Source of the DNA: Azolla caroliniana
Taxonomy: Eukaryota; Plantae; Polypodiophyta
Assembly: GCA_043228905.1 (NCBI GenBank)
Contig: JBHGNT010000023.1
Location: 558,001 to 622,000, forward strand
Direction: 5' to 3'
DNA: 64,000 bases
Shown: positions 10,201-60,495 of the stretch, piece after piece
Layout of the letters: each line of letters starts with the position of its first letter
How positions within the stretch are numbered: the first letter of the stretch is position 1
Position numbers and translations under genes: made by a program
Notes under the pieces: model-generated
The model's input: the letters and a program-made list of their open reading frames with translations, nothing else
The model's database searches: none
What the model was told of the DNA's origin: nothing

Positions 10201-12250
10201 AGAAATTAGTAAAGTAGGGGAGGGAGTTGAGAAGAGCGCATGAGTAAATTAAAATGTTCATACCTGGCTCGTGTGATCCCGGATTTTTGTGTTCAAAGAT
10301 GCCAATCGAAGCTAACAATACTAGTTATGATATGGAATTAAAAAATCAAGATTTTGAAACTCAGGTCGAGAGACATGAAGAAATTAGTAAATTAGGGGAG
10401 GGAGTTGAGAAGAGCGCGTGAGTAAATTAAAATGTTCATAGCTGGCTCGTGTGATATCGGATTTTTGTGTTCAAACATGCGAATTAAAGCTAACAACACT
10501 AGCTATGATAAGGAATGAAAAAATCAAGATTTTGAAACTCAGGTCGACGAGAGCGCGTTGACAAGAGCGCATGAGTAAATTAGAATGTTCATACCTGGCT
10601 CTTGTGATATCGGATTTTAGTGTTCAAAGATGCCAATCGAAGCTAACAACACTAGCTATGATATGGAATTAAAAAATCAAGATTTTGAGACTAAGGTCGA
10701 GAGACATGAAGAAATTAGTAAATTAGGGGAGGGAGTTGATAAGAGCGCGTGAGTAAATTAAAATGTTCATACCTGGCTCTTGTGATATCGGATTTTAGTG
10801 TTCAAAGATGCCAATCGAAGCTAACAACACTAGCTATGATATGGAATTAAAAAATCAAAATTTCGAAACTTGGGTCGAGAGACATGAAGAAATTAGTAAA
10901 TTAGGGGAGGGAGTTGAGAAAAGCGCGTGAGTAAATTAAAATGTTCATAGCTGGCTCGTGTGATATCGGATTTTTGTGTTCAAACATGCGAATCAAAGCT
11001 AACAACACTAGCTATGATAAGGAATGAAAAAATCAAGATTTTGAAACTCAGGTCGAGAGACATGAAGAAATTAGTAAATTAGAGGAGGGTGTTGACGAGA
11101 GCGCGTGAGGAAATTAAAATGTTCATAGCTGGCTCGTGTGATATCGGATTTTTGTGTTCAGAGATGCGAATCGAAGCTAACAACACTAGCTATGATATGG
11201 AATTAAAAAATCAAGATTTTGAAACTCAGGTCGCGAGACATGAAGAAATTAGTAAATTAGAGGAGGGTGTTGACAAGAGCGCATGAGTAAATTAAAATGT
11301 TCATACCTGGCTCTTGTGATATCGGATTTTAGTGTTCAAAGATGCCAATCGAACCTAACAACACTAGCTATGATATGGAATTAAAAAATCAAGATTTTGA
11401 GACTAAGGTCGAGAGACATGAAGAAATTAGTAAATTAGGGGAGGGAGTTGAGAAGAGCGCGTGAGTAAATTAAAATGTTCATAGCTGGCTCGTGTGATAT
11501 CGGATTTTTGTGTTGAAACATGCGAATCGAAGCTAACAACACTTGCTATGATATGGAATTAAAAAATCAAGATTTTGAAACTCAGGTCGAGAGACATGAA
11601 GAAATTAGTAAAGTAGGGGAGGGAGTTGAGAAGAGCGCATGAGTAAATTAAAATGTTCATACCTGGCTCGTGTGATCCCGGATTTTTGTGTTCAAAGATG
11701 CCAATCGAAGCTAACAATACTAGTTATGATATGGAATTAAAAAATCAAGATTTTGAAACTCAGGTCGAGAGACATGAAGAAATTAGTAAATTAGGGGAGG
11801 GAGTTGAGAAGAGCGCGTGAGTAAATTAAAATGTTCATAGCTGGCTCGTGTGATATCGGATTTTTGTGTTCAAACATGCGAATTAAAGCTAACAACACTA
11901 GCTATGATAAGGAATGAAAAAATCAAGATTTTGAAACTCAGGTCGACGAGAGCGCGTTGACAAGAGCGCATGAGTAAATTAGAATGTTCATACCTGGCTC
12001 TTGTGATATCGGATTTTAGTGTTCAAAGATGCCAATCGAAGCTAACAACACTAGCTATGATATGGAATTAAAAAATCAAGATTTTGAGACTAAGGTCGAG
12101 AGACATGAAGAAATTAGTAAATTAGGGGAGGGAGTTGATAAGAGCGCGTGAGTAAATTAAAATGTTCATACCTGGCTCTTGTGATATCGGATTTTAGTGT
12201 TCAAAGATGCCAATCGAAGCTAACAACACTAGCTATGATATGGAATTAAA
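9370..12250 (+). repeat. 1399-bp duplication (8 monomers including one 153-bp deletion monomer)
   Basis: Junction GTCGACGAGAGCGCGTTGAC at 10543 and 11942; 8x178-25=1399. Confidence 0.88.
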
Positions 12251-18820: not shown

Positions 18821-21800
18821 ATATGGAATCAAAAAATCAAGATTTTGAGACTCAGCTCGAGAGACATGAAGAAATTAGTAAATTAGGGGAGGGAGTTGAT
18901 AAGAGCGCGTGAGTAAATTAAAATGTTAACAATCGAAGCTAACAACACTAGCTATGATATGGAATTAAAAAATCAAGATTTCGAAACTTGGGTCTAGAGA
19001 CATGAAGAAATTAGTAAATTAGGGGAGGGAGTTTAGAAGAGCGCTTGAGTAAATTAAAATGTTCATAGCTGGCTCGTGTGATATTGGATTTTTGTGTTCA
19101 AACATGCGAATCGAAGCTAACAACACTTGCTATGATATGGAATCAAAAAATCAAGATTTTGAGACTCAGCTCGAGAGACATGAAGAAATTAGTAAGTTAG
19201 GGGAGGGAGTTGATAAGAGCGCGTGAGTAAATTAAAATGTTCATACCTGGCTCGTGTGATACCGGATTTTTGTGTTCAAACATGCGAATCGAAGCTAACA
19301 ACACTAGCTAGGATATGGAATTAAAAAATCAAGATTTTGAAACTCAGGTCGAGAGACATGTAGAAATTAGTAAATTAGGGGAGGGAGCTAGGAAGAGCGC
19401 GTGAGTAAATTAAAATGTTCATACCTGGCTCGTGTGATCCCGGATTTTTGTGTTCAAAGATGCGAATCGAAGCTAACAACACTAGCTATGATATGGAATT
19501 AAAAAATCAAGATTTTGAAACTTGGGTCGAGAGACATGAAGAAATTAGTAAAGTAGGGGAGGGAGTTGAGAAGAGCGCGTGAGTAAATTAAAATGTTCAT
19601 ACCTGGCTCGTGTGATATCGGATTTTAGTGTTCAAACATGCGAATCGAAGCTAACAACACTAGCTATGATATGGAATTAAAAAATCAAGATTTTGAAACT
19701 CAGGTCGAGAGACATGAAGAAATTAGTAAAGTAGGGGAGGGAGTTGAGAAGAGCGCGTGAGTAAATTAAAATGTTCATAGCTGGCTCGTGTGATATCGGA
19801 TTTTAGTGTTCAAACATGCGAATCGAAGCTAACAACACTAGCTATGATATGGAATTAAGAAATCAATATTTTGAAACTTAGGTCGAGAGACATGAAGAAA
19901 TTAGTAAATTAGAGGAGGGCGTTGACGAGAGCGCGTGAGTAAATTAAAATGTTCATAGCTGGCTCCTGTGATATTGGATTTTTGTGTTCAAACATGCGAA
20001 TCGAAGCTAACAACACTTGCTATGATATGGAATCAAAAAATCAAGATTTTGAGACTCAGCTCGAGAGACATGAAGAAATTAGTAAATTAGGGGAGGGAGT
20101 TGATAAGAGCGCGTGAGTAAATTAAAATGTTTATACCTGGCTCGTGTGATACCGGATTTTTGTGTTCAAACATGCGAATCGAAGCTAACAACACTAGCTA
20201 GGATATGGAATTAAAAAATCAAGATTTTGAAACTCAGGTCGAGAGACATGAAGAAATTAGTAAATTAGGGGAGGGAGCTAGGAAGAGCGCGCGAGTAAAT
20301 TAAAATGTTCATAGCTGGCTCGTGTGATATCGGATTTTAGTGTTCAAAGATGCCAATCGAAGCTAACAACACTAGCTATGATAAGAAATGAAAAAATCAA
20401 GATTTTGAAACTCAGGTCGAGAGACATGAAGATATTAGTAAATTAGAGGAGGGAGTTGAGAAGAGCGCGTGAGTAAATTAAAATGTTCATAGCTGGCTCG
20501 TGTGATCCCGGATTTTTATGTTCAAAGATGCGAATCGAAGCTAACAACACTACGTATGATATGGAATGAAAAAATCAAGATTTTGAAACTTGGGTCGAGA
20601 GACATCAAGAAATTAGTAAATTACATGAGGGAGTTGAGAAGAGCGCGTGAGTAAATTAAACTGTTCATAGCTGGCTCGTGTGATATCGGATTTTAGTGTT
20701 CAAACATATGAATCGAAGCTAACAACACTAGCTATGATATGGAATTAAAAAATCAAGATTTTTGAAACTTGGGTCGAGAGACATCAAGAAATTAGTAAAT
20801 TACATGACGGAGTTGAGAAGAGCGCGCGAGTAAATTAAAATGTTCATAGCTGGCTCGTGTGATGTCGGATTTTTGTGTTCAAACATGCTAATCAAAGCTA
20901 ACAACACTAGCTATGATAAGGAATGAAAAAATCAAGATTTTGAAACTCAGGTCGAGAGACATGAAGATATTAGTAAATTAGAGGAGGGAGTTGAGAAGAG
21001 CGCATGAGTAAATTAAAATGTTCATAGCTGGCTCGTGTGATCCCGGATTTTTATGTTCAAAGATGCGAATCGAAGCTAACAACACTACGTATGATATGGA
21101 ATGAAAAAATCAAGATTTTGAAACTCAGGTCGAGAGACATGAAGATATTAGTAAATTAGAGGAGGGAGTTGAGAAGAGCGCGTGAGTAAATTAAAATGTT
21201 CATAGCTGGCTCCTGTGATATCGGATTTTTGTGTTCAGAGATGCGAATCGAAGCTAACAACACTAGCTATGATATGGAATTAAAAAATCAAGATTTTGAA
21301 ACTCAGGTCGAGAGACATGAAAAAATTAGTAAATTAGAGGAGGGTGTTGACAAGAGCGCATGAGTAAATTAAAATGTTCATACCTGGCTCTTGTGATATC
21401 GGATTTTAGTGTTCAAAGATGCCAATCGAAGCTAACAACACTAGCTATTATATCGAATTAAAAAATCAAAATTTCGAAACTCAGGTCGAGAGACATGAAG
21501 AAATTAGTAAAGTAGGGGAGGGAGTTGAGAAGAGCGCGTGAGTAAATTAAAATGTTCATAGCTGGCTCGTGTGATATCGGATTTTAGTGTTCAAACATGC
21601 GAATCAAAGCTAACAACACTAGCTATGATAAGGAATGAAAAAATCATGATTTTGAAACTTGGGTCGAGAGACATGAAGAAATTAGTAAATTAGAGGAGGG
21701 TGTTGACGAGAGCGCGTGAGTAAATTAAAATGTTCATAGCTGGCTCGTGTGATATCGGATTTTAGTGTTCAAACATGCGAATCGGATCTAACAACACTAA

Positions 21801-39900: not shown

Positions 39901-41264
39901 TGAGGGAGTTGATAAGAGCGCGTGAGTAAATTAAAATGTTCATAGCTGGCTCGTGTGATATCGGATTTTAGTGTTCAAAGATGCGAATCGAAGCTAACAA
40001 CACTAGCTATGATAAGGAATGAAAAAATCAAGATTTTGAAACTCAGGTCGAGAGACATGAAGATATTAGTAAATTAGAGGAGGGATTTGAGAAGAGCGCG
40101 TGAGTAAATTAAAATGTTCATAGCTGGCTCGTGTGATCCCGGATTTTTATGTTCAAACATGCGAATCGAAGCTAACAACACTAGCTATGATATGAAATTA
40201 AAAAATCAAGATTTTGAAACTCAGGTCGAGAGAGATGAAGAAATTAGTAAATTAGAGGAGGGTATTGCAAGAGCGCGTGAGTAAATTAAAATGTTCAAAG
40301 CTGGCTCGTGTGATATCGGATTTTTGTGTTCAAAGATGCCAATCGAAGCTAACAACACTAGCTATGATATGGAATTAAAAAATCAAGATTTTGAAACTCA
40401 GATCGAGAGACATGAATAAATTAGTAAATTAGAGGAGGGTGTTGACAAGAGCGCATGAGTAAATTAAAATGTTCATACCTGGCTCTTGTGATATCGGATT
40501 TTTGTGTTCAAAGATACCAATCGAAGCTAACAACACTAGCTATGATATGGAATTAAAAAATCAAAATTTCGGAACTTGGGTCGAGAGGCATGAAGAAATT
40601 AGTAAATTAGGGGAGGGAGTTTAGAAGAGCGCGTGAGTAAATTAAAATGTTCATAGCTGGCTCGTGTGATATCGGATTTTTGTGTTCAAACATGCGAATC
40701 GAAGCTAACAACACTTGCTATGATATGGAATTAAAAAATCAAGATTTTGAAACTCAGGTCGAGAGACATGAAGAAATTAGTAAATGACATGAGGGAGTTG
40801 ACAAGAGCGCATGAGTAAATTAAAATGTTCATACCTGGCTCTTGTGATATCGGATTTTAGTGTTCAAAGATGCCAATCGAAGCTAACAACACTAGCTATG
40901 ATATGGAATTAAAAAATCAAAATTTCGAAACTTGGGGCGAGAGACATGAAGAAATTAGTAAATTAGGGGAGGGAGTTGAGAAGAGCGCGTGAGTAAATTA
41001 AAATGTTCATAGCTGGCTCGTGTGATATCGGATTTTTGTGTTCAAACATGCGAATCGAAGCTAACAACACTTGCTATGATATGGAATTAAAAAATCAAGA
41101 TTCTGAAACTCAGGTCGAAAGACATGAAGAAATTAGTAAAGTAGGGGAGGGTGTTGACGAGAGCGCGTGAGTAAATTAAAATGTTCATAGCTGGTTCGTG
41201 CGATATCGGATTTTAGTGTTCAAACATGCGAATCGAAGCTAACAACACTAACTATGATATGGAA

Positions 41265-41288
41265 GGGTTTAGGGTTTAGGGTTTAGGG
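41265..41288 (+). repeat. Interstitial telomeric tract GGG(TTTAGGG)3 inside a satellite monomer, copy 1 (right flank type A)
   Basis: ATGGAA-GGGTTTAGGGTTTAGGGTTTAGGG-TTGGGTCGAGAGACATCAAG. Confidence 0.97.
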
Positions 41289-42333
41289 TTGGGTCGAGAG
41301 ACATCAAGAAATTAGTAAATTACATGAGGGAGTTGAGAAGAGCGCGTGAGTAAATTAAAATGTTCATAGCTGGCTCGTGTGATATCGGATTTTAGTGTTC
41401 AAACATGCGAATCAAAGCTAACAACACTAGCTATGATAAGGAATGAAAAAATCAAGATTTTGAAACTCAGGTCGAGAGACATGAAGAAATTAGTAAATTA
41501 GAGGAGGGTGTTGACAAGAGCGCATGAGTAAATTAAAATGTTCATACCTGGCTCTTGTGATATCGGATTTTAGTGTTCAAAGATGCCAATCGAAGCTAAC
41601 AACACTACCTATGATATGGAATTAAAAAATCAAGATTTCGAAACTTGGGTCGAGAGACATGAAGAAATTAGTAAATTAGGGGAGGGAGTTTAGAAGAGCG
41701 CTTGAGTAAATTAAAATGTCCATAGCTGGCTCGTGTGATATCGGATTTTTATGTTCAAACATGCGAATCGAAGCTAACAACACTAGCTATGATAAGGAAC
41801 GAAAAAATCAAGATTTTGAAACTCAGGTCGTGAGACATGAAGATATTAGTAAATTAGAGGAGGGAGTTGAGAAGAGCGCGTGAGTAAATTAAAATGTTCA
41901 TAGCTGGCTCGTGTGATCCCGGATTTTTATGTTCAAAGATGCGAATCGAAGCTAACAACACTACGTAAGATATGGAATGAAAAAATCGAGATTTTGAAAC
42001 TCAGGTCGAGAGACATCAAGAAATTGGTAAATTACATGAGGGAGTTGAGAAGACCGCTTGAGTAAATTAAAATGTTCATAGCTGGCTCGTGTGATATCGG
42101 ATTTTTGTGTTCAAACATGCGAATCGAAGCTAACAACACTAGCTATGATAAGGAATTAAAAAATCAAGATTTTGAAACTCAGGTCGAGAGACATGAAGAA
42201 ATTAGTAAAGTAGGGGATGGTGTTGACGAGAGCGCGTGAGTAAATTAAAATGTTCATAGCTGGTTCGTGCGATATCGGATTTTAGTGTTCAAACATGCGA
42301 ATCGAAGCTAACAACACTAACTATGATATGGAA

Positions 42334-42357
42334 GGGTTTAGGGTTTAGGGTTTAGGG
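42334..42357 (+). repeat. Interstitial telomeric tract, copy 2 (flank type B)
   Basis: Same 24-mer, followed by TTGGGTCGTGAGACATGAAGATATT. Confidence 0.97.
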
Positions 42358-43579
42358 TTGGGTCGTGAGACATGAAGATATTAGTAAATTAGAGGAGGGA
42401 GTTGAGAAGAGCGCGTGAGTAAATTAAAATGTTCATAGCTGGCTCGTGTGATCCCGGATTTTTATGTTCAAAGATGCGAATCGAAGCTAACAAGACTACG
42501 TATGATATGGAATGAAAAAATCGAAATTTTGAAACTCAGGTCGAGAGACATGAAGAAATTGGTAAATTAGAGGAGGGTATTGCAAGAGCGCGTGAGTAAA
42601 TTAAAATGTTCATAGCTGGCTCGTGTGATATCGGATTTTTGTGTTCAGAGATGCGAATCGAAGCTAACAACACTAGCTATGATATGGAATTAAAAAATCA
42701 AGATTTTGAAACTCAGGTCGAGAGACATGAAGAAATTAGTAAATTAGAGGAGGGTGTTGACAAGAGCGCATGAGTAAATTAAAATGTTCATACCTGGCTC
42801 TTGTGATATCGGATTTTAGTGTTCAAAGATGCCAATCGAATCTAACAACACTAGCTATGATATGGAATTAAAAAATCAAGATTTCGAAACTTGGGTCGAG
42901 AGACATGAAGAAATTAGTAAATTAGGGGAGGGAGTTGAGAAGAGCGCGTGAGTAAATTAAAATGTTCATAGCTGGCTCGTGTGATATCGGATTTTTGTGT
43001 TCAAACATGCGAATCGAAGCTAACAACACTTGCTATGATATGGAATCAAAAAATCAAGATTTTGAAACTCAGGTCGAGAGACATGAAGAAATTAGTAAAT
43101 TAGAGGAGGGTGTTGACAAGAGCGCATGAGTAAATTAAAATGTTCATACCTGGCTCTTGTGATATCGGATTTTAGTGTTCAAAGATGCCAATCGAAGCTA
43201 ACAACACTAGCTATGATATGGAATTAAAAAATCAAAATTTCGAAACTTGGGGTGAGAGACATGAAGAAATTAGTAAATTAGGGGAGGGAGTTGAGAAGAG
43301 CGCGTGAGTAAATTAAAATGTTCATAGCTGGCTCGTGTGATATCGGATTTTTGTGTTCAAACATGCGAATCGAAGCTAACAACACTTGCTATGATATGGA
43401 ATTAAAAAATCAAGATTCTGAAACTCAGGTCGAAAGACATGAAGAAATTAGTAAAGTAGGGGAGGGTGTTGACGAGAGCGCGTGAGTAAATTAAAATGTT
43501 CATAGCTGGTTCGTGCGATATCGGATTTTAGTGTTCAAACATGCGAATCGAAGCTAACAACACTAACTATGATATGGAA

Positions 43580-43603
43580 GGGTTTAGGGTTTAGGGTTTA
43601 GGG
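43580..43603 (+). repeat. Interstitial telomeric tract, copy 3 (flank type A)
   Basis: Same 24-mer, 2315 bp after copy 1. Confidence 0.97.
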
Positions 43604-45715
43604 TTGGGTCGAGAGACATCAAGAAATTAGTAAATTACATGAGGGAGTTGAGAAGAGCGCGTGAGTAAATTAAAATGTTCATAGCTGGCTCGTGTGATAT
43701 CGGATTTTAGTGTTCAAACATGCGAATCGAAGCTAACAACACTAGCTATGATAAGGAATGAAAAAATCAAGATTTTGAAACTCAGGTCGAGAGACATGAA
43801 GAAATTAGTAAATTAGAGGAGGGTGTTGACAAGAGCGCATGAGTAAATTAAAATGTTCATACCTGGCTCTTGTGATATCGGATTTTAGTGTTCAAAGATG
43901 CCAATCGAAGCTAACAACACTACCTATGATATGGAATTAAAAAATCAAGATTTCGAAACTTGGGTCGAGAGACATGAAGAAATTAGTAAATTAGGGGAGG
44001 GAGTTTAGAAGAGCGCTTGAGTAAATTAAAATGTCCATAGCTGGCTCGTGTGATATCGGATTTTTATGTTCAAACATGCGAATCGAAGCTAACAACACTA
44101 GCTATGATAAGGAATGAAAAAATCAAGATTTTGAGACTCAGGTCGTGAGACATGAAGATATTAGTAAATTAGAGGCGGGAGTTGAGAAGAGCGCGTGAGT
44201 AAATTAAAATGTTCATAGCTGGCTCGTGTGATCCCGGATTTTTATGTTCAAAGATGCGAATCGAAGCTAACAACACTACGTATGATATGGAATGAAAAAA
44301 TCGAGATTTTGAAACTCAGGTCGAGAGACATCAAGAAATTGGTAAATTACATGAGGGAGTTGAGAAGACCGCTTGAGTAAATTAAAATGTTCATAGCTGG
44401 CTCGTGTGATATCGGATTTTTGTGTTCAAACATGCGAATCGAAGCTAACAACACTAGCTATGATAAGGAATTAAAAAATCAAGATTTTGAAACTCAGGTC
44501 GAGAGACATGAAGAAATTAGTAAAGTAGGGGATGGTGTTGACGAGAGCGCGTGAGTAAATTAAAATGTTGATAGCTGGCTCGTGTGATATCGGATTTTAG
44601 TGTTCAAACATGCGAATCGAAGCTAACAACACTTGCTATGATATGGAATTAAACAATCAAGATTTTGAAACTCAGGTCGAGAGACATGAAGAAATTGGTA
44701 AATTAGAGGAGGGTATTGCAAGAGCGCGTGAGTAAATTAAAATGTTCATAGCTGGCTCGTGTGATATCGGATTTTTGTGTTCAGAGATGCGAATCGAAGC
44801 TAACAACACTAGCTATGATATGGAATTAAAAAATCAAGATTTTGAAACTCAGGTCGAGAGACATGAAGAAATTAGTAAATTAGAGGAGGGTGTTGACAAG
44901 AGCGCATGAGTAAATTAAAATGTTCATACCTGGCTCTTGTGATATCGGATTTTAGTGTTCAAAGATGCCAATCGAATCTAACAACACTAGCTATGATATG
45001 GAATTAAAAAATCAAGATTTCGAAACTTGGGTCGAGAGACATGAAGAAATTAGTAAATTAGGGGAGGGAGTTGAGAAGAGCGCGTGAGTAAATTAAAATG
45101 TTCATAGCTGGCTCGTGTGATATCGGATTTTTGTGTTCAAACATGCGAATCGAAGCTAACAACACTTGCTATGATATGGAATCAAAAAATCAAGATTTTG
45201 AAACTCAGGTCGAGAGACATGAAGAAATTAGTAAATTAGAGGAGGGTGTTGACAAGAGCGCATGAGTAAATTAAAATGTTCATACCTGGCTCTTGTGATA
45301 TCGGATTTTAGTGTTCAAAGATGCCAATCGAAGCTAACAACACTACCTATGATATGGAATTAAAAAATCAAGATTTCGAAACTTGGGTCGAGAGACATGA
45401 AGAAATTAGTAAATTAGGGGAGGGAGTTTAGAAGAGCGCTTGAGTAAATTAAAATGTTCATAGCTGGCTCGTGTGATATCGGATTTTTGTGTTCAAACAT
45501 GCGAATCGAAGCTAACAACACTAGCTATGATAAGGAATGAAAAAATCAAGATTTTGAAACTCAGGTCGAGAGACATGAAGAAATTAGTAAAGTAGGGGAT
45601 GGTGTTGACGAGAGCGCGTGAGTAAATTAAAATGTTCATAGCTGGTTCGTGCGATATCGGATTTTAGTGTTCAAACATGCGAATCGAAGCTAACAACACT
45701 ACGTATGATATGGAA

Positions 45716-45739
45716 GGGTTTAGGGTTTAGGGTTTAGGG
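45716..45739 (+). repeat. Interstitial telomeric tract, copy 4 (flank B, left ACTACGTATG)
   Basis: Same 24-mer. Confidence 0.97.
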
Positions 45740-46523
45740 TTGGGTCGTGAGACATGAAGATATTAGTAAATTAGAGGAGGGAGTTGAGAAGAGCGCGTGA
45801 GTAAATTAAAATGTTCATAGCTGGCTCGTGTGATCCCGGATTTTTATGTTCAATGATGCGAATCGAAGCTAACAACACTACGTATGATATGGAATGAAAA
45901 AATCGAGATTTTGAAACTCAGGTCGAGAGACATGAAGAAATTGGTAAATTAGAGGAGGGTATTGCAAGAGCGCGTGAGTAAATTAAAATGTTCATACCTG
46001 GCTCGTGTGATATCGGATTTTTGTGTTCAGAGATGCGAATCGAAGCTAACAACACTAGCTATGATATGGAATTAAAAAATCAAGATTTTGAAACTCAGGT
46101 CGAGAGACATAAAGAAATTAGTAAATTAGAGGAGGGTGTTGACAAGAGCGCATGAGTAAATTAAAATGTTCATACCTGGCTCTTGTGATATCGGATTTTA
46201 GTGTTCAAAGATGCCAATTGAATCTAACAACACTAGCTATGATATGGAATTAAAAAATCAAGATTTCGAAACTTGGGTCGAGAGACATGAAGAAATTAGT
46301 AAATTAGGGGAGGGAGTTGAGAAGAGCGCGTGAGTAAATTAAAATGTTCATAGCTGGCTCGTGTGATATCGGATTTTTGTGTTCAAACATGCGAATCGAA
46401 GCTAACAACACTTGCTACGATATGGAATCAAAAAATCAAGATTTTGAGACTCAGGTCGAGAGACATGAAGAAATTAGTAAATTAGGGGAGGGAGTTGATA
46501 AGAGCGCGTGAGTAAATTAAAAT

Positions 46524-46931
46524 GTTAACAATCGAAGCTAACAACACTAGCTATGATATGGAATTAAAAAATCAAGATTTCGAAACTTGGGTCTAGAGAC
46601 ATGAAGAAATTAGTAAATTAGGGGAGGGAGTTGATAAGAGCGCGTGAGTAAATTAAAATGTTAACAATCGAAGCTAACAACACTAGCTATGATATGGAAT
46701 TAAAAAATCAAGATTTCGAAACTTGGGTCTAGAGACATGAAGAAATTAGTAAATTAGGGGAGGGAGTTGATAAGAGCGCGTGAGTAAATTAAAATGTTAA
46801 CAATCGAAGCTAACAACACTAGCTATGATATGGAATTAAAAAATCAAGATTTTGAAACTCAGGTCGAGAGACATGAAGAAATTAGTAAAGTAGGGGATGG
46901 TGTTGACGAGAGCGCGTGAGTAAATTAAAAT
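46524..46931 (+). repeat. Triplet of 136-bp deletion monomer; further triplets start at 47823, 48588, 52487 and 53252
   Basis: GTTAAC at 46524, 46660 and 46796 (period 136). Confidence 0.93.
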
Positions 46932-47013
46932 AATCATAGCTGGTTCGTGCGATATCGGATTTTAGTGTTCAAACATGCGAATCGAAGCTAACAACACTAA
47001 CTATGATATGGAA

Positions 47014-47037
47014 GGGTTTAGGGTTTAGGGTTTAGGG
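47014..47037 (+). repeat. Interstitial telomeric tract, copy 5 (flank B)
   Basis: Same 24-mer. Confidence 0.97.
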
Positions 47038-48312
47038 TTGGGTCGTGAGACATGAAGATATTAGTAAATTAGAGGAGGGAGTTGAGAAGAGCGCGTGAGT
47101 AAATTAAAATGTTCATAGCTGGCTCGTGTGATATCGGATTTTAGTGTTCAAAGATGCCAATCGAATCTAACAACACTAGCTATGATATGGAATTAAAAAA
47201 TCAAGATTTCGAAACTTGGGTCGAGAGACATGAAGAAATTAGTAAATTAGGGGAGGGAGTTGAGAAGAGCGCGTGAGTAAATTAAAATGTTCATAGCTGG
47301 CTCGTGTGATATCGGATTTTTGTGTTCAAACATGCGAATCGAAGCTAACAACACTTGCTATGATATGGAATCAAAAAATCAAGATTTTGAAACTCAGGTC
47401 GAGAGACATGAAGAAATTAGTAAATTAGAGGAGGGTGTTGACAAGAGCGCATGAGTAAATTAAAATGTTCATACCTGGCTCTTGTGATATCGGATTTTAG
47501 TGTTCAAAGATGCCAATTGAATCTAACAACACTAGCTATGATATGGAATTAAAAAATCAAGACTTCGAAACTTGGGTCGAGAGACATGAAGAAATTAGTA
47601 AATTAGGGGAGGGAGTTGAGAAGAGCGCGTGAGTAAATTAAAATGTTCATAGCTGGCTCGTGTGATATCGGATTTTTGTGTTCAAACATGCGAATCGAAG
47701 CTAACAACACTTGCTACGATATGGAATCAAAAAATCAAGATTTTGAGACTCAGGTCGAGAGACATGAAGAAATTAGTAAATTAGGGGAGGGAGTTGATAA
47801 GAGCGCGTGAGTAAATTAAAATGTTAACAATCGAAGCTAACAACACTAGCTATGATATGGAATTAAAAAATCAAGATTTCGAAACTTGGGTCTAGAGACA
47901 TGAAGAAATTAGTAAATTAGGGGAGGGAGTTGATAAGAGCGCGTGAGTAAATTAAAATGTTAACAATCGAAGCTAACAACACTAGCTATGATATGGAATT
48001 AAAAAATCAAGATTTCGAAACTTGGGTCTAGAGACATGAAGAAATTAGTAAATTAGGGGAGGGAGTTGATAAGAGCGCGTGAGTAAATTAAAATGTTAAC
48101 AATCGAAGCTAACAACACTAGCTATGATATGGAATTAAAAAATCAAGATTTTGAAACTCAGGTCGAGAGACATGAAGAAATTAGTAAAGTAGGGGATGGT
48201 GTTGACGAGAGCGCGTGAGTAAATTAAAATAATCATAGCTGGTTCGTGCGATATCGGATTTTAGTGTTCAAACATGCGAATCGAAGCTAACAACACTAAC
48301 TATGATATGGAA

Positions 48313-48336
48313 GGGTTTAGGGTTTAGGGTTTAGGG
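48313..48336 (+). repeat. Interstitial telomeric tract, copy 6 (flank B)
   Basis: Same 24-mer. Confidence 0.97.
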
Positions 48337-49077
48337 TTGGGTCGTGAGACATGAAGATATTAGTAAATTAGAGGAGGGAGTTGAGAAGAGCGCGTGAGTA
48401 AATTAAAATGTTCATAGCTGGCTCGTGTGATATCGGATTTTTGTGTTCAAACATGCGAATCGAAGCTAACAACACTTGCTATGATATCGAATCAAAAAAT
48501 CAAGATTTTGAGACTCAGGTCGAGAGACATGAAGAAATTAGTAAATTAGGGGAGGGAGTTGATAAGAGCGCGTGAGTAAATTAAAATGTTAACAATCGAA
48601 GCTAACAACACTAGCTATGATATGGAATTAAAAAATCCAGATTTCGAAACTTGGGTCTAGAGACATGAAGAAATTAGTAAATTAGGGGAGGGAGTTGATA
48701 AGAGCGCGTGAGTAAATTAAAATGTTAACAATCGAAGCTAACAACACTAGCTCTGATATGGAATTAAAAAATCAAGATTTCGAAACTTGGGTCTAGAGAC
48801 ATGAAGAAATTAGTAAATTAGGGGAGGGAGTTGATAAGAGCGCGTGAGTAAATTAAAATGTTAACAATCGAAGCTAACAACACTAGCTATGATATGGAAT
48901 TAAAAAATCAAGATTTTGAAACTCAGGTCGAGAGACATGAAGAAATTAGTAAAGTAGGGGATGGTGTTGACGAGAGCGCGTGAGTAAATTAAAATGTTCA
49001 TAGCTGGTTCGTGCGATATCGGATTTTAGTGTTCAAACATGCGAATCGAAGCTAACAACACTAACTATGATATGGAA

Positions 49078-49101
49078 GGGTTTAGGGTTTAGGGTTTAGG
49101 G
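49078..49101 (+). repeat. Interstitial telomeric tract, copy 7 (flank B)
   Basis: Same 24-mer. Confidence 0.97.
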
Positions 49102-51678
49102 TTGGGTCGTGAGACATGAAGATATTAGTAAATTAGAGGAGGGAGTTGAGAAGAGCGCGTGAGTAAATTAAAATGTTCATAGCTGGCTCGTGTGATCCCG
49201 GATTTTTATGTTCAAAGATGCGAATCGAAGCTAACAACACTACGTATGATATGGAATGAAAAAATCGAGATTTTGAAACTCAGGACGAGAGACATGAAGA
49301 AATTGGTAAATTAGAGGAGGGTATTGCAAGAGCGCGTGAGTAAATTAAAATGTTCATAGCTGGCTCGTGTGATATCGGATTTTTGTGTTCAGAGATGCAA
49401 ATCGAAGCTAACAACACTAGCTATGATATGGAATTAAAAAATCAAGATTTTGAAACTCAGGTCGAGAGACATCAAGAAATTAGTAAATTACATGACGGAG
49501 TTGAGAAGCGCGCGTGAGTAAATTAAAATGTTCATAGCTGGCTCGTGTGATACCGGATTTTTGTGTTCAAAGATGCCAATCGAAGCTAACAACACTAGCT
49601 ATGATATGAAATGAAAAAATCAAGATTTTGAAACTCAGGTCGAAAGCGCGTGAGTAAATTAAAATGTTCATAGCTGGCTCGTGTGATATCGGATTTTTGT
49701 GTTCAAACATGCGAATCGAAGCTAACAACACTTGCTATGATATGGAATTAAAAAATCAAGATTTTGAAACTCAGGTCGAGAGACATGAAGAAATTAGTAA
49801 AGTAGGGGAGGGAGTTGAGAAGAGCGCGTGAGTAAATTAAAATGTTCATAGCTGGCTCGTGTGATATCGGATTTTAGTGTTCAAACATGCGAATCGAAGC
49901 TAACAACACTAACTATGATATGGAATTAAAAAATCAAGATTTTGAAACTTGGTTCTAGAGATATCAAGAAATTAGTAAATTACATGAGGGAGTTGAGAAG
50001 AGCGCGTGAGTAAATTAAAATGTTCATAGCTGGCTCGTGTGATATCGGATTTTAGTGTTCAAACATGCGAATCAAAGCTAACAACACTAGCTATGATAAG
50101 GAATGAAAAAATCAAGATTTTGAAACTCAGGTCGAGAACCATGAAGATATTAGTAAATTAGAGGAGGGAGTTGAGAAGAGCGCGTGAGTAAATTAAAATG
50201 TTCATAGCTGGCTCGTGTGATCCCGGATTTTTATGTTCAAAGATGCGAATCGAAGCTAACAACACTACGTATGATATGGAATTAAAAAATCAAGATTTTG
50301 AAACTCAGGTCGAGAGACATGAAGAAATTAGTAAATTAGAGGAGGGTGTTGACAAGAGCGCATGAGTAAATTAAAATTTTCATACCTGGCTCTTGGGATA
50401 TCGGATTTTAGTGTTCAAAGATGCGAATCGAAGCTAACAACACTACCTCTAATATGGAATTAAAAAATCAAGATTTCGAAACTTGGGTCGAGAGACATGA
50501 AGAAATTAGCAAATTAGTAAATTAAAATGTTCATAGCTGGCTCGTGTCATATCGGATTTTTGTGTTCAAACATGCGAATCAAAGCTAACAACACTAGCTA
50601 TGATAAGGAATGAAAAAATCAATATTTTGAAACTCAGGTCGAGAGACATGAAGAAATTAGTAAATTAGAGGAGGGTGTTGACGAGAGCGCGTGAGTAAAT
50701 TAAAATGTTCATAGCTGGCTCGTGTGATATCGGATTTTTGTGTTCAGAGATGCGAATCGAAGCTAACAACACTAGCTATGATATGGAATTAAAAAATCAA
50801 AATTTTGAAACTCAGGTCGAGAGACATGAAGAAATTAGTAAATTAGAGGAGGGTGTTGACAAGAGCGCATGAGTAAATTAAAATGTTCATACCTGGCTCT
50901 TGTGATATCGGATTTTAGTGTTCAAAGATGCCAATCGAAGCTAACAACACTAGCTATGATATGGAATTAAAAAATCAAAATTTCGAAACTTGGGTCGAGA
51001 GACATGAAGAAATTAGTAAATTAGGGGAGGGAGTTGAGAAGAGCGCGTGAGTAAATTAAAATGTTCAGAGCTGGCTCGTGTGATATCGGATTTTTGTGTT
51101 CAAACATGCGAATCCAAGCTAACAACACTAGCTATGATAAGGAATGAAAAAATCAAGATTTTGAAACTCAGGTCGAGAGACATGAAGAAATTAGTAAATT
51201 ACATGAGGGTGTTGATAAGAGCGCATGAGTAAATTAAAATGTTCATACCTGGCTCTTGTGATATCGGATTTTAGTGTTCAAAGATGCCAATCGAAGCTAA
51301 CAACACTACCTATGATATGGAATTAAAAAATCAAGATTTCGAAACTTGGGTCGAGAGACATGAAGAAATTAGTAAATTAGGGGAGGGAGTTTAGAAGAGC
51401 GCTTGAGTAAATTAAAATGTTCATAGCTGGCTCGTGTGATATCGGATTTTTGTGTTCAAACATGCGAATCGAAGCTAACAACACTAGCTATGATAAGGAA
51501 TGAAAAAATCAAGATTTTGAAACTCAGGTCGAGAGACATGAAGAAATTAGTAAAGTAGGGGATGGTGTTGACGAGAGCGCGTGAGTAAATTAAAATGTTC
51601 ATAGCTGGTTCGTGCGATATCGGATTTTAGTGTTCAAACATGCGAATCGAAGCTAACAACACTACGTATGATATGGAA

Positions 51679-51702
51679 GGGTTTAGGGTTTAGGGTTTAG
51701 GG
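51679..51702 (+). repeat. Interstitial telomeric tract, copy 8 (flank B, left ACTACGTATG)
   Basis: Same 24-mer. Confidence 0.97.
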
Positions 51703-52976
51703 TTGGGTCGTGAGACATGAAGATATTAGTAAATTAGAGGAGGGAGTTGAGAAGAGCGCGTGAGTAAATTAAAATGTTCATAGCTGGCTCGTGTGATCCC
51801 GGATTTTTATGTTCAAAGATGCGAATCGAAGCTAACAACACTACGTATGATATGGAATGAAAAAATCGAGATTTTGAAACTCAGGTCGAGAGACATGAAG
51901 AAATTGGTAAATTAGAGGAGGGTATTGCAAGAGCGCGTGAGTAAATTAAAATGTTCATACCTGGCTCGTGTGATATCGGATTTTTGTGTTCAGAGATGCG
52001 AATCGAAGCTAACAACACTAGCTATGATATGGAATTAAAAAATCAAGATTTTGAAACTCAGGTCGAGAGACATAAAGAAATTAGTAAATTAGAGGAGGGT
52101 GTTGACAAGAGCGCATGAGTAAATTAAAATGTTCATACCTGGCTCTTGTGATATCGGATTTTAGTGTTCAAAGATGCCAATTGAATCTAACAACACTAGC
52201 TATGATATGGAATTAAAAAATCAAGATTTCGAAACTTGGGTCGAGAGACATGAAGAAATTAGTAAATTAGGGGAGGGAGTTGAGAAGAGCGCGTGAGTAA
52301 ATTAAAATGTTCATAGCTGGCTCGTGTGATATCGGATTTTTGTGTTCAAACATGCGAATCGAAGCTAACAACACTTGCTACGATATGGAATCAAAAAATC
52401 AAGATTTTGAGACTCAGGTCGAGAGACATGAAGAAATTAGTAAATTAGGGGAGGGAGTTGATAAGAGCGCGTGAGTAAATTAAAATGTTAACAATCGAAG
52501 CTAACAACACTAGCTATGATATGGAATTAAAAAATCAAGATTTCGAAACTTGGGTCTAGAGACATGAAGAAATTAGTAAATTAGGGGAGGGAGTTGATAA
52601 GAGCGCGTGAGTAAATTAAAATGTTAACAATCGAAGCTAACAACACTAGCTATGATATGGAATTAAAAAATCAAGATTTCGAAACTTGGGTCTAGAGACA
52701 TGAAGAAATTAGTAAATTAGGGGAGGGAGTTGATAAGAGCGCGTGAGTAAATTAAAATGTTAACAATCGAAGCTAACAACACTAGCTATGATATGGAATT
52801 AAAAAATCAAGATTTTGAAACTCAGGTCGAGAGACATGAAGAAATTAGTAAAGTAGGGGATGGTGTTGACGAGAGCGCGTGAGTAAATTAAAATAATCAT
52901 AGCTGGTTCGTGCGATATCGGATTTTAGTGTTCAAACATGCGAATCGAAGCTAACAACACTAACTATGATATGGAA

Positions 52977-53000
52977 GGGTTTAGGGTTTAGGGTTTAGGG
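52977..53000 (+). repeat. Interstitial telomeric tract, copy 9 (flank B)
   Basis: Same 24-mer. Confidence 0.97.
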
Positions 53001-53741
53001 TTGGGTCGTGAGACATGAAGATATTAGTAAATTAGAGGAGGGAGTTGAGAAGAGCGCGTGAGTAAATTAAAATGTTCATAGCTGGCTCGTGTGATATCGG
53101 ATTTTTGTGTTCAAACATGCGAATCGAAGCTAACAACACTTGCTATGATATCGAATCAAAAAATCAAGATTTTGAGACTCAGGTCGAGAGACATGAAGAA
53201 ATTAGTAAATTAGGGGAGGGAGTTGATAAGAGCGCGTGAGTAAATTAAAATGTTAACAATCGAAGCTAACAACACTAGCTATGATATGGAATTAAAAAAT
53301 CCAGATTTCGAAACTTGGGTCTAGAGACATGAAGAAATTAGTAAATTAGGGGAGGGAGTTGATAAGAGCGCGTGAGTAAATTAAAATGTTAACAATCGAA
53401 GCTAACAACACTAGCTCTGATATGGAATTAAAAAATCAAGATTTCGAAACTTGGGTCTAGAGACATGAAGAAATTAGTAAATTAGGGGAGGGAGTTGATA
53501 AGAGCGCGTGAGTAAATTAAAATGTTAACAATCGAAGCTAACAACACTAGCTATGATATGGAATTAAAAAATCAAGATTTTGAAACTCAGGTCGAGAGAC
53601 ATGAAGAAATTAGTAAAGTAGGGGATGGTGTTGACGACAGCGCGTGAGTAAATTAAAATGTTCATAGCTGGTTCGTGCGATATCGGATTTTAGTGTTCAA
53701 ACATGCGAATCGAAGCTAACAACACTAACTATGATATGGAA

Positions 53742-53765
53742 GGGTTTAGGGTTTAGGGTTTAGGG
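53742..53765 (+). repeat. Interstitial telomeric tract, copy 10 (flank B)
   Basis: Same 24-mer. Confidence 0.97.
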
Positions 53766-55209
53766 TTGGGTCGTGAGACATGAAGATATTAGTAAATTAG
53801 AGGAGGGAGTTGAGAAGAGCGCGTGAGTAAATTAAAATGTTCATAGCTGGCTCGTGTGATCCCGGATTTTTATGTTCAAAGATGCGAATCGAAGCTAACA
53901 ACACTACGTATGATATGGAATGAAAAAATCGAGATTTTGAAACTCAGGACGAGAGACATGAAGAAATTGGTAAATTAGAGGAGGGTATTGCAAGAGCGCG
54001 TGAGTAAATTAAAATGTTCATAGCTGGCTCGTGTGATATCGGATTTTTGTGTTCAGAGATGCGAATCGAAGCTAACAACACTAGCTATGATATGGAATTA
54101 AAAAATCAAGATTTTGAAACTCAGGTCGAGAGACATCAAGAAATTAGTAAATTACATGACGGAGTTGAGAAGCGCGCGTGAGTAAATTAAAATGTTCATA
54201 GCTGGCTCGTGTGATACCGGATTTTTGTGTTCAAAGATGCCAATCGAAGCTAACAACACTAGCTATGATATGAAATGAAAAAATCAAGATTTTGAAACTC
54301 AGGTCGAAAGCGCGTGAGTAAATTAAAATGTTCATAGCTGGCTCGTGTGATATCGGATTTTTGTGTTCAAACATGCGAATCGAAGCTAACAACACTTGCT
54401 ATGATATGGAATTAAAAAATCAAGATTTTGAAACTCAGGTCGAGAGACATGAAGAAATTAGTAAAGTAGGGGAGGGAGTTGAGAAGAGCGCGTGAGTAAA
54501 TTAAAATGTTCATAGCTGGCTCGTGTGATATCGGATTTTAGTGTTCAAACATGCGAATCGAAGCTAACAACACTAACTATGATATGGAATTAAAAAATCA
54601 AGATTTTGAAACTTGGTTCTAGAGATATCAAGAAATTAGTAAATTACATGAGGGAGTTGAGAAGAGCGCGTGAGTAAATTAAAATGTTCATAGCTGGCTC
54701 GTGTGATATCGGATTTTAGTGTTCAAACATGCGAATCAAAGCTAACAACACTAGCTATGATAAGGAATGAAAAAATCAAGATTTTGAAACTCAGGTCGAG
54801 AACCATGAAGATATTAGTAAATTAGAGGAGGGAGTTGAGAAGAGCGCGTGAGTAAATTAAAATGTTCATAGCTGGCTCGTGTGATCCCGGATTTTTATGT
54901 TCAAAGATGCGAATCGAAGCTAACAACACTACGTATGATATGGAATTAAAAAATCAAGATTTTGAAACTCAGGTCGAGAGACATGAAGAAATTAGTAAAT
55001 TAGAGGAGGGTGTTGACAAGAGCGCATGAGTAAATTAAAATTTTCATACCTGGCTCTTGGGATATCGGATTTTAGTGTTCAAAGATGCGAATCGAAGCTA
55101 ACAACACTACCTCTGATATGGAATTAAAAAATCAAGATTTCGAAACTTGGGTCGAGAGACATGAAGAAATTAGCAAATTAGTAAATTAAAATGTTCATAG
55201 CTGGCTCGT

Positions 55210-58200
55210 GTCATATCGGATTTTTGTGTTCAAACATGCGAATCAAAGCTAACAACACTAGCTATGATAAGGAATGAAAAAATCAATATTTTGAAACTCA
55301 GGTCGAGAGACATGAAGAAATTAGTAAATTAGAGGAGGGTGTTGACGAGAGCGCGTGAGTAAATTAAAATGTTCATAGCTGGCTCGTGTGATATCGGATT
55401 TTTGTGTTCAGAGATGCGAATCGAAGCTAACAACACTAGCTATGATATGGAATTAAAAAATCAAAATTTTGAAACTCAGGTCGAGAGACATGAAGAAATT
55501 AGTAAATTAGAGGAGGGTGTTGACAAGAGCGCATGAGTAAATTAAAATGTTCATACCTGGCTCTTGTGATATCGGATTTTAGTGTTCAAAGATGCCAATC
55601 GAAGCTAACAACACTAGCTATGATATGGAATTAAAAAATCAAAATTTCGAAACTTGGGTCGAGAGACATGAAGAAATTAGTAAATTAGGGGAGGGAGTTG
55701 AGAAGAGCGCGTGAGTAAATTAAAATGTTCAGAGCTGGCTCGTGTGATATCGGATTTTTGTGTTCAAACATGCGAATCCAAGCTAACAACACTAGCTATG
55801 ATAAGGAATGAAAAAATCAAGATTTTGAAACTCAGGTCGAGAGACATGAAGAAATTAGTAAATTACATGAGGGTGTTGATAAGAGCGCGTGAGTAAATTA
55901 AAATGTTCATACCTGGCTGTTGTGATATCGGATTTTAGTGTTCAAAGATGCCAATCGAAGCTAACAACACTAGCTATGATATGGAATTAAAAAATCAAAA
56001 TTTCGAAACTTGGGTCGAGAGACATGAAGAAATTAGTAAATTAGGGGAGGGAGTTGAGAAGAGCGCGTGAGTAAATTAAAATGTTCATAGTTGGCTCGTG
56101 TGATATCGGATTTTTGTGTTCAAACATGTGAATCAAAGCTAACAACACTAGCTATGATAAGGAATGAAAAAATCAAGATTTTGAAACTCAGGTCGAGAGA
56201 CATGAAGAAATTAGTAAATTAGAGGAGGGTGTTGACGAGAGCGCGTGAGTAAATTAAAATGTTGATAGCTGGCTCGTGTGATATCGGATTTTAGTGTTCA
56301 AACATGCGAATCGAAGCTAACAACACTAACTATAATATGGAATTAAAAAATCAAGATTTTGAAACTTGGGTCGAGAGACATCAAGAAATTAGTAAATTAG
56401 AGGAGGGTATTGCAAGAGCGCGTGAGTAAATTAAAATGTTCATAGCTGGCTCGTGTGATATCGGATTTTTGTGTTCAGAGATGCGAATCGAAGCTAACAA
56501 CTCTAGCTATGATATGGAATCAAAAAATCAAGATTTTGAAACTTGGGTAGAGAGACATGAAGAAATTAGTAAATTACATGAGGGAGTTGATAAGAGCGCG
56601 TGAGTAAATTAAAATGTTCATAGCTGGCTCGTGTGATATCGGATTTTAGTGTTCAAAGATGCGAATCGAAGCTAACAACACTAGCTATGATAAGGAATGA
56701 AAAAATCAAGATTTTGAAACTCAGGTCGAGAGACATGAAGATATTAGTAAATTAGAGGAGGGAGTTGAGAAGAGCGCGTGAGTAAATTAAAATGTTCATA
56801 GCTGGCTCGTGTGATCCCGGATTTTTATGTTCAAACATGCGAATCGAAGCTAACAACACTAGCTATGATATGGAATTAAAAAATCAAGATTTTGAAACTC
56901 AGGTCGAGAGAGATGAAGAAATTAGTAAATTAGAGGAGGGTATTGCAAGAGCGCGTGAGTAAATTAAAATGTTCAAAGCTGGCTCGTGTGATATCGGATT
57001 TTTGTGTTCAAAGATGCCAATCGAAGCTAAGAACACTAGCTATGATATGGAATTAAAAAATCCAGATTTTGAAACTCAGATCGAGAGACATGAAGAAATT
57101 AGTAAATTAGAGGAGGGTGTTGACAAGAGCGCATGAGTAAATTAAAATGTTCATACCTGGCTCTTGTGATATCGGATTTTTGTGTTCAAAGATATCAATC
57201 GAAGCTAACAACACTAGCTATGATATGGAATTAAAAAATCAAGATTTTGAAACTCAGGTCGAGAGACATGAAGAAATTAGTAAATTAGAGGAGGGTGTTG
57301 ACAAGAGCGCATGAGTAAATTAAAATGTTCATACCTGGCTCTTGTGATATCGGATTTTAGTGTTCAGAGATGCCAATCGAAGCTAAGAACACTAGCTATG
57401 ATATGGAATTAAAAAATCAAGATTTCGAAACTTGGGTCGAGAGACATGAAGAAATTAGTAAATTACATGAGGGAGTTGATAAGAGCGCGTGAGTAAATTA
57501 AAATGTTCATAGCTGGCTCGTGTGATATCGGATTTTAGTGTTCAAAGATGCGAATCGAAGCTAACAACACTAGCTATGATAAGGTATAAAAAAATCAAGA
57601 TTTTGAAACTCAGATCGAGAGACATGAAGATATTAGTAAATTAGAGGAGGGAGTTGAGAAGAGCGCGTGAGTAAATTAAAATGTTCATAGCTGGCTCGTG
57701 TGATCCCGGATTTTTATGTTCAAACATGCGAATCGAAGCTAACAACACTAGCTATGATATGGAATTAAAAAATCAAGATTTTGAACTCAGGTCGAGAGAG
57801 ATGAAGAAATTAGTAAATTAGAGGAGGGTATTGCAAGAGCGCGTGAGTAAATTAAAATGTTCAAAGCTGGCTCGTGTGATATCGGATTTTTGTGTTCAAA
57901 GATGCCAATCGAAGCTAAGAACACTAGCTATGATATGGAATTAAAAAATCAAGATTTTGAAACTCAGATCGAGAGACATGAAGAAATTAGTAAATTAGAG
58001 GAGGGTGTTGACAAGAGCGCATGAGTAAATTAAAATGTTCATACCTGGCTCTTGTGATATCGGATTTTTGTGTTCAAAGATACCAATCAAAGCTAACAAC
58101 ACTAGCTATGATATGGAATTAAAAAATCAAAATTTCGAAACTTGGGTCGAGAGACATGAAGAAATTAGTAAATTAGGGGAGGGAGTTTAGAAGAGCGCGT

Positions 58201-60495
58201 GAGTAAATTAAAATGTTCATAGCTGGCTCGTGTGATATCGGATTTTTGTGTTCAAACATGCGAATCGAAGCTAACAACACTTGCTATGATATGGAATTAA
58301 AAAATCAAGATTTTGAAACTCAGGTCGAAAGACATGAAGAAATTAGTAAAGTAGGGGAGGGTGTTGACGAGAGCGCGTGAGTAAATTAAAATGTTCATAG
58401 CTGGTTCGTGCGATATCGGATTTTAGTGTTCAAACATGCGAATCGAAGCTAACAACACTAACTATGATATGGAAGGGTTTAGGGTTTAGGGTTTAGGGTT
58501 GGGTCGAGAGACATCAAGAAATTAGTAAATTACATGAGGGAGTTGAGACGAGCGCGTGAGTAAATTAAAATGTTCATAGCTGGCTCGTGTGATATCGGAT
58601 TTTAGTGTTCAAACATGCGAATCAAAGCTAACAACACTAGCTATGATAAGGAATGAAAAAATCAAGATTTTGAAACTCAGGTCGAGAGACATGAAGAAAT
58701 TAGTAAATTAGAGGAGGGTGTTGACAAGAGCGCATGAGTAAATTAAAATGTTCATACCTGGCTCTTGTGATATCGGATTTTAGTGTTCAAAGATGCCAAT
58801 CGAAGCTAACAACACTAGCTATGACATGGAATTAAAAAATCAAAATTTCGAAACTTGGGTCGAGAGACATGAAGAAATTAGTAAATTAGGGGAGGGAGTT
58901 GAGAAGAGCGCGTGAGTAAATTAAAATGTTCATAGCTGGCTCGTGTGATATCGGATTTTTGTGTTCAAACATGCGAATCAAAGCTAACAACACTAGCTAT
59001 GATAAGGAATGAAAAAATCAATATTTTGAAACTCAGGTCGAGAGACATGAAGAAATTAGTAAATTAGAGGAGGGTGTTGACGAGAGCGCGTGAGTAAATT
59101 AAAATGTTCATAGCTGGCTCGTGTGATATCGGATTTTTGTGTTCAGAGATGCGAATCGAAGCTAACAACACTAGCTATGATATGGAATTAAAAAATCAAA
59201 ATTTTGAAACTCAGGTCGAGAGACATGAAGAAATTAGTAAATTAGAGGAGGGTGTTGACAAGAGCGCATGAGTAAATTAAAATGTTCATACCTGGCTCTT
59301 GTGATATCGGATTTTAGTGTTCAAAGATGCCAATCGAAGCTAACAACACTAGCTATGATATGGAATTAAAAAATCAAAATTTCGAAACTTGGGTCGAGAG
59401 ACATGAAGAAATTAGTAAATTAGGGGAGGGAGTTGAGAAGAGCGCGTGAGTAAATTAAAATGTTCAGAGCTGGCTCGTGTGATATCGGATTTTTGTGTTC
59501 AAACATGCGAATCCAAGCTAACAACACTAGCTATGATAAGGAATGAAAAAATCAAGATTTTGAAACTCAGGTCGAGAGACATGAAGAAATTAGTAAATTA
59601 CATGAGGGTGTTGATAAGAGCGCGTGAGTAAATTAAAATGTTCATACCTGGCTCTTGTGATATCGGATTTTAGTGTTCAAAGATGACAATCGAAGCTAAC
59701 AACACTAGCTATGATATGGAATTAAAAAATCAAAATTTCGAAACTTGGGTCGAGAGACATGAAGAAATTAGTAAATTAGGGGAGGGAGTTGAGAAGAGCG
59801 CGTGAGTAAATTAAAATGTTCATAGTTGGCTCGTGTGATATCGGATTTTTGTGTTCAAACATGTGAATCAAAGCTAACAACACTAGCTATGATAAGGAAT
59901 GAAAAAATCAAGATTTTGAAACTCAGGTCGAGAGACATGAAGAAATTAGTAAATTAGAGGAGGGTGTTGACGAGAGCGCGTGAGTAAATTAAAATGTTCA
60001 TAGCTGGCTCGTGTGATATCGGATTTTAGTGTTCAAACATGCGAATCGAAGCTAACAACACTAACTATAATATGGAATTAAAAAATCAAGATTTTGAAAC
60101 TTGGGTCGAGAGACATCAAGAAATTAGTAAATTAGAGGAGGGTATTGCAAGAGCGCGTGAGTAAATTAAAATGTTCATAGCTGGCTCGTGTGATATCGGA
60201 TTTTTGTGTTCAGAGATGCGAATCGAAGCTAACAACTCTAGCTATGATATGGAATCAAAAAATCAAGATTTTGAAACTTGGGTAGAGAGACATGAAGAAA
60301 TTAGTAAATTACATGAGGGAGTTGATAAGAGCGCGTGAGTAAATTAAAATGTTCATAGCTGGCTCGTGTGATATCGGATTTTAGTGTTCAAAGATGCGAA
60401 TCGAAGCTAACAACACTAGCTATGATAAGGAATGAAAAAATCAAGATTTTGAAACTCAGGTCGAGAGACATGAAGATATTAGTAAATTAGAGGAG
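55210..60495 (+). repeat. About 1.5-kb block repeated at 3735 bp offset
   Basis: Pseudo-ORFs at 55711 and 59446; ACTATAATATGG, AACTCTAGC and GGGTAGAGAG variants shared. Confidence 0.8.
58475..58498 (+). repeat. Interstitial telomeric tract, copy 11 (flank type A)
   Basis: Same 24-mer, followed by TTGGGTCGAGAGACATCAAG. Confidence 0.97.

Follow-up and report, generated by a model that had tools for sequence, protein, structure and literature searches.

Short interstitial telomeric sequences at repaired breaks have been described in primates, rodents and horse, where a few perfect telomeric units appear suddenly, accompanied by a deletion at the target and by nucleotides at the break that continue the telomere register (PMC7215372). 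In mammals, target deletions are the commonest change at such loci, and in-register nucleotides are found at 77.5% of them (PMC7215372). The locus described here resembles these loci in each respect: perfect internal units occur 11 times, they are sudden when compared with a paralogous empty site, and they are accompanied by a short deletion and by in-register nucleotides. It differs from them in that the target is the monomer of a fern satellite, the scar has been multiplied 11-fold, and the tract has no sequence derived from telomerase RNA that would implicate the enzyme.

Telomeric and satellite sequence are also joined in one repeat unit in the CenTel mosaic satellites of Arabidopsis, which expanded in situ into higher-order repeats (bioRxiv 10.64898/2026.05.10.723265), as the present monomers have. 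The CenTel satellites are pericentromeric, with units of 530–600 bp (ITR-1R and ITR-4L) that carry partly degenerate telomere islands of about 180 bp antisense to CEN178, and they are proposed to have arisen by point mutation and drift (bioRxiv 10.64898/2026.05.10.723265). In contrast, the present unit is 179 bp long and contains 3.5 perfect telomeric units acquired by a one-step replacement, and it has no degenerate islands of the drift type. The subtelomeric satellites TcSAT1–3 of Tanacetum (PMC6532368) likewise have nucleosome-sized monomers with telomere motifs. Their motifs are single or degenerate and belong to the family consensus, whereas here the perfect tract is found in a young subfamily, 11 of the 365 monomers, for which a progenitor can be named. 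Chromosome healing, or de novo telomere addition, is similar in that repeats are added directly to non-telomeric sequence with minimal priming homology, but here the tract lies internally, spans 27 bp and is followed by satellite that is still in register. Earlier work has described both short telomeric insertions at sites of break repair and mosaic repeats of telomere and satellite, and the present locus is a clean, young example in which the two are combined. It provides a base-level record of the birth of a satellite subfamily, comprising the scar, its progenitor, a conversion and a readable order of block duplications.

The satellite array and its telomeric tract

The window, the whole 64,000-bp stretch of DNA analysed, consists of satellite, and the first telomeric tract lies about two thirds of the way along it:

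1–64000, + strand: 178-bp satellite array, from anchor spacing and TRF
41264–41290, + strand: perfect TTTAGGG register of 27 bp, made up of the 24-bp insert with a flanking A and TT (TRF row, 100% matches)

Scanning with a conserved 28-base anchor, with which TRF agrees, revealed head-to-tail monomers in a single orientation that fill the window without interruption. The anchor marks 366 monomer starts on the + strand and none on the opposite strand of the 64-kb window, with spacings of 178 bp (296 times), 177 bp (26), 136 bp (25) and 179 bp (12), and a few of 151 or 153 bp. Since all anchor intervals fall between 136 and 179 bp, the window is free of foreign DNA. A literature search with five 20-mers found the monomer sequence in no paper, and the satellite family was not found described. 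The + strand of the window is composed of 36.8% A, 26.6% T, 24.4% G and 12.2% C, a strong strand asymmetry that is purine-rich with G over C. The G-rich box of the normal monomer contains TTAGGGG (vertebrate-type telomere hexamer), at 118 sites including 68, 246 and 958.

The original prediction, made from the sequence alone, reported 11 identical TTTAGGG-type tracts and none in the first 41 kb. Both points were borne out: the 24-mer has exactly 11 perfect matches in the window, at the predicted coordinates, all on the + strand and all beyond 41 kb, where 100 shuffles gave an expectation of 0. The G-strand of the tract is the + strand, and TTTAGGG, in keeping with what is known of ferns, is presumably the telomere repeat of the host. 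The 11 tract monomers are each 179 bp long, and their flanks are uniform in 11 of 11, with GGAA on the left and TTGGG on the right, the same junctions that the prediction had named. Its figure of 27 bp of perfect repeat, including the flanking A and TT, was reproduced by TRF, which reports for each tract 27 bp, 3.9 copies of a 7-bp unit and 100% matches. The in-register nucleotides at the junctions are the A on the left and the TT on the right, of which the TT is already present in the progenitor type. TTGGG is a common normal variant as well, not peculiar to the tract monomers, with AAACTTGGGTCG occurring 89 times.

The tract of 24 bp stands in place of a lost A-rich segment of 23 bp. The replaced 23-mer is the array consensus and has 112 exact copies in the window. 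No other normal version of the segment is more than 3 edits from the consensus, and the tract is 16 edits away. No intermediates between the A-rich segment and the tract were found among 273 scored monomers. Outside the tracts, telomere-type dimers are absent from both strands of the window, CCCTAAA has 0 occurrences, and no degenerate telomere motifs were found in the window. These observations bear on the idea that the satellite segment drifted gradually until it resembled telomere motifs, the kind of origin proposed for Arabidopsis CEN178 (bioRxiv 10.64898/2026.05.10.723265). A perfect tract at such an edit distance is not what drift predicts, and because intermediates are missing, drift is excluded within the window; we give it a negligible probability overall. 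The locus thereby stands in contrast to the drift origin proposed for the Arabidopsis mosaic repeats.

A hairpin at the replaced 'dyad' segment was considered and rejected. Its folding energies are no better than those of shuffles (z of −0.55 and 0.02), giving no reason to call the segment break-prone.

Single origin and the founder monomer

The tract is linked to further sequence that the 11 monomers have in common, and the comparison with normal monomers makes use of the following features:

41195–41201, + strand: two private substitutions linked to the tract, C to T and T to C, from motif counts
41150–41296, + strand: 147-bp core haplotype common to 11 of 11 copies, made up of 115 bp on the left, the tract and 8 bp on the right, from copy comparison
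41162–41340, + strand: founder tract monomer, type A, with the tract at 41265–41288 and the monomer context h-*i-I; right half identical to that of normal monomers 115, 125, 172 and 182
17125–17302, + strand: closest tract-less relative, a J-type monomer that already has TTGGG, used as stand-in for the 'empty site'

The prediction had noted that an otherwise absent variant precedes each tract. Indeed, GGTTCGTGCG occurs 11 times in the window and in tract monomers only, compared with 255 occurrences of its normal counterpart GGCTCGTGTG. GGTTCGTG and TCGTGCG, with 11 occurrences each, are similarly confined to tract monomers. The private substitutions sit 64 and 70 bp from the tract. The first mismatches between tract copies appear at −116 and +9, the exceptions being private double changes in two subtypes, and the 11 copies amount to 5 distinct monomer sequences. 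In a tree of the left half of the monomer (left 104 columns), the tract monomers form an exclusive clade with support of 0.93, while in a tree of the right half (right 52 columns) they are not monophyletic. An exclusive clade on the left but not on the right indicates that the tract and its left flank have one ancestor and that the right flank has two sources. The common 147-bp core with its two private substitutions likewise indicates that the tract arose once. The tract thus has one origin and was acquired in one step, and the single ancestry for which the prediction had proposed a monomer tree is upheld by the left-half clade and the common core.

The same linkage bears on whether the tract could be an artefact of assembly or polishing. 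When positions 41190–41365 of the window (176 bases) were compared with the short contigs of four sequencing runs, the satellite was extremely abundant in all four. Among the matches listed, no run contig spans the junctions, which leaves some room for an artefact; depth is flat over the tract and may stem from true telomere contigs. Against an artefact, the tract is found in 5 monomer sequences and several contexts, always together with the two substitutions at a distance, and it tracks the block duplications exactly, as an error process would not. We consider an artefact extremely unlikely. In metagenome contigs, the 40-base junction had 0 matches, as did the 48-base control from a normal monomer, so that the absence carries no weight. 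The satellite is abundant also in the run filed under a second organism label, which means that two or more labelled taxa or samples share it. The ACATGAGG variant carried by the right half of the founder is rare genome-wide, nearly all run contigs having G and G at 41323 and 41325.

Type A comprises 3 copies, starting at 41162, 43477 and 58372. Several normal monomers have exactly the right half of type A, with its TTGGG, and the nearest full-length relatives of type A are J-type monomers. Apart from the 23/24-bp segment, the J monomer at 17125 differs from type A in the two private substitutions and a single further base, and in nothing else; the 'empty site' of this comparison is a paralogous J monomer and not an orthologous allele. 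The monomers preceding and following the founder differ from those around J monomers at 4 and 3 positions, compared with about 15 for unrelated positions. Because both neighbours of the founder match the J context and the phase is kept, the break appears to have been rejoined in register and not fused to foreign DNA. Judged from the monomer comparisons, the in-register flanks fit the repair of a two-ended break and argue against a healed end fused to unrelated satellite.

Probable repair of a broken monomer

The explanation that we regard as probable is a single break in a J-type monomer, to which about 3.5 repeats were added, most likely by telomerase, before the ends were rejoined and the product spread by duplication. 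Within this explanation we infer the break itself, telomerase as the polymerase and the joining by microhomology. The prediction had proposed the same course, and those of its parts that could be tested are upheld. One double-strand break would have occurred inside the A-rich segment of a J-type monomer, with the loss of 23 A-rich bases. On the centromere-side 3' end, finishing in ...GGAA, about 3.5 TTTAGGG repeats would then have been synthesised, most likely by telomerase, and the new ...GGGTT end would have been joined across the break to the pre-existing TTGGG, through an overlap of 2 nt. The product would be a 179-bp monomer still in the register of the array. Its 147-bp core later moved into a T-type background, and nested block duplications brought the number of copies to 11. 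With such an event, an origin of short interstitial telomere repeats by break repair, documented mainly in mammals, would extend to a fern.

Several considerations count against this explanation. Nothing in the sequence points to a particular polymerase, none of the run contigs listed bridges a junction, the swap is nearly length-neutral (23 to 24 bp), which is a coincidence under plain end joining, and the founder could have come from another array of the genome and then been imported.

The nearly length-neutral, in-register swap would be no coincidence if telomerase had begun to heal the end and homology-guided repair, using a sister or homologous array, had then taken over. Register would be maintained by the monomers upstream, with the 24-nt tail bubbling out opposite the 23-nt segment and ...GGGTT priming at the TTGGG of the donor. 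We judge this alternative to be rather unlikely. If it were true, telomerase and recombination would compete at breaks in terminal satellites, and the tracts could be seeds for new telomeres or sites for telomere-repeat-binding proteins.

Sequence alone cannot tell apart telomerase, the copying of telomeric DNA and the reverse transcription of a telomere-tailed RNA. Filler DNA repair in plants typically deletes a few bases and puts a short templated insert in their place, with end overlaps of 1–2 nt. The tract has this pattern of short deletion, short insert and 1–2 nt overlaps, and is a perfect copy of the canonical telomere unit, both as expected if the same break and spread had involved a DNA polymerase that copied 24–27 bases from real telomeric DNA, without telomerase. 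This could have been a templated insertion of the polymerase-theta type or a double template switch at a stalled fork, with the telomere in cis or another telomere as template. However, templated inserts mostly copy sequence adjacent to the break, and the tract has the orientation that telomerase would give on the centromere-side end, although this agreement has an even chance of arising anyway. Copying from telomeric DNA is accordingly an alternative that we hold to be unlikely, but with appreciable weight.

The tract could also have been left by reverse transcription that was primed by the broken end and aborted soon after it began, the template being an RNA whose tail is complementary to the telomere, either from an endonuclease-less Penelope-like element or a telomeric transcript. 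Insertion of telomeric RNA has been proposed as an alternative route to short interstitial telomeric sequences (PMC7215372). Yet no element-derived sequence lies beside any tract and the window is satellite alone; Penelope-like element sequence was looked for next to the tracts and not found, the anchor intervals leaving no larger gap. We regard this origin as improbable.

A further reading takes the left junction as a former chromosome end, at which a new telomere capped a terminal deletion and later shrank to 3.5 repeats, the end then being extended by satellite captured from the sister chromatid or from another chromosome end. The orientation of the tract agrees with such a history. At a healed end, telomere repeats run on to the end of the molecule, but here satellite resumes in register after 27 bp, one base off, with a right half and a following monomer that fit the J context. 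If capture was random and not guided by upstream homology, the probability of matching both register and monomer type is well below 1 in 100. A healed end is very improbable.

Spread of the tract through the array

The eight type B copies, the remaining type A copies and the duplicated block that carries two of the tract monomers are the following:

41697–41874, + strand: T-type monomer whose right part matches that of type B, with 2 differences in 52 columns, both from TCAGG versus TTGGG
42231–42409, + strand: type B tract monomer (core with T-type right part), monomer context d-*M-D
43477–43655, + strand: type A copy, identical to the 41162 monomer, one 2315-bp higher-order repeat further on (1951 bp common, 23 mismatches)
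45613–45791, + strand: type B copy with a private AA-to-CG change 13–14 bp left of the tract
46911–47089, + strand: type B copy that follows three 136-bp monomers and has a private GT-to-AA change 81–82 bp left of the tract
48210–48388, + strand: type B copy with the sequence of the 46911 copy, 1299 bp downstream of it
48975–49153, + strand: type B copy with the sequence of the 42231 copy
51576–51754, + strand: type B copy, duplicate of the 45613 copy at an offset of 5963 bp (2285 bp common, 12 mismatches)
52874–53052, + strand: type B copy, duplicate of the 48210 copy at an offset of 4664 bp (4218 bp common, 18 mismatches)
53639–53817, + strand: type B copy, duplicate of the 48975 copy, inside the duplicated 4.2-kb block
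58372–58550, + strand: type A copy with one private change, in the h-*i-I context, 17.2 kb from the first copy (887 bp common, 12 mismatches)
47362–51579, + strand: 4.2-kb block with two tract monomers, duplicated at 52026–56243 (18 mismatches in 4218 bp)

The 8 type B copies have the same core as type A, followed from the ninth base after the tract by a T-type right part. The monomer next to type B is the usual follower of T, and the left neighbours of type B differ from those of type A. The core joined to a T-type right part, with other neighbours on the left, suggests that conversion, or else a pair of crossovers, transferred a patch of about 150 bp. The arrangement of flanks points to acquisition of the core by a second monomer background via conversion or crossover.

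The monomer map contains nested duplicated blocks of 0.77, 1.3, 2.3, 4.7/6.0 and 17 kb, with local units of 1299 bp and 765 bp. The prediction that the tract had spread by satellite duplication is in agreement with these multi-monomer blocks, which range from 0.77 to 17 kb and whose duplication included the tracts. As read from the shared stretches listed above, block duplications are what raised the tract count to 11. The tract is a unique tag that could be used to trace satellite turnover and exchange between chromosome ends and accessions.

Other odd monomers have multiplied in the same array. A 136-bp variant with a 42-bp internal deletion (alignment columns 27–69) has 22 occurrences, at sites that include 18904–19039, 46503–46910, 47802–48209, 48567–48974, 52466–52873 and 53231–53638, often in runs of three immediately upstream of a tract monomer. 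Since this deletion variant was amplified 22 times, the 11 copies of another odd monomer need no selection. Selection for the tract was considered and is not supported, given that amplification in the same array. The best reading of the tract is that of a neutral scar of repair, multiplied by the normal turnover of the array, and not that of a selected device.

At least three more deletion variants are present, each duplicated with its own block. They include the monomers at 10413 and 11812 (153 bp), those at 50357 and 55021 (151 bp), and a 3' deletion variant of 136/137 bp at 37292, 49509, 54173 and 60864, which was copied along with its block. In addition, a block of about 30 monomers is repeated with equal type order at about 18.5–23.7 kb and about 28.6–33.7 kb, a spacing of about 10 kb, and its recurrence indicates that large segmental duplication shapes the tract-free part of the array as well.
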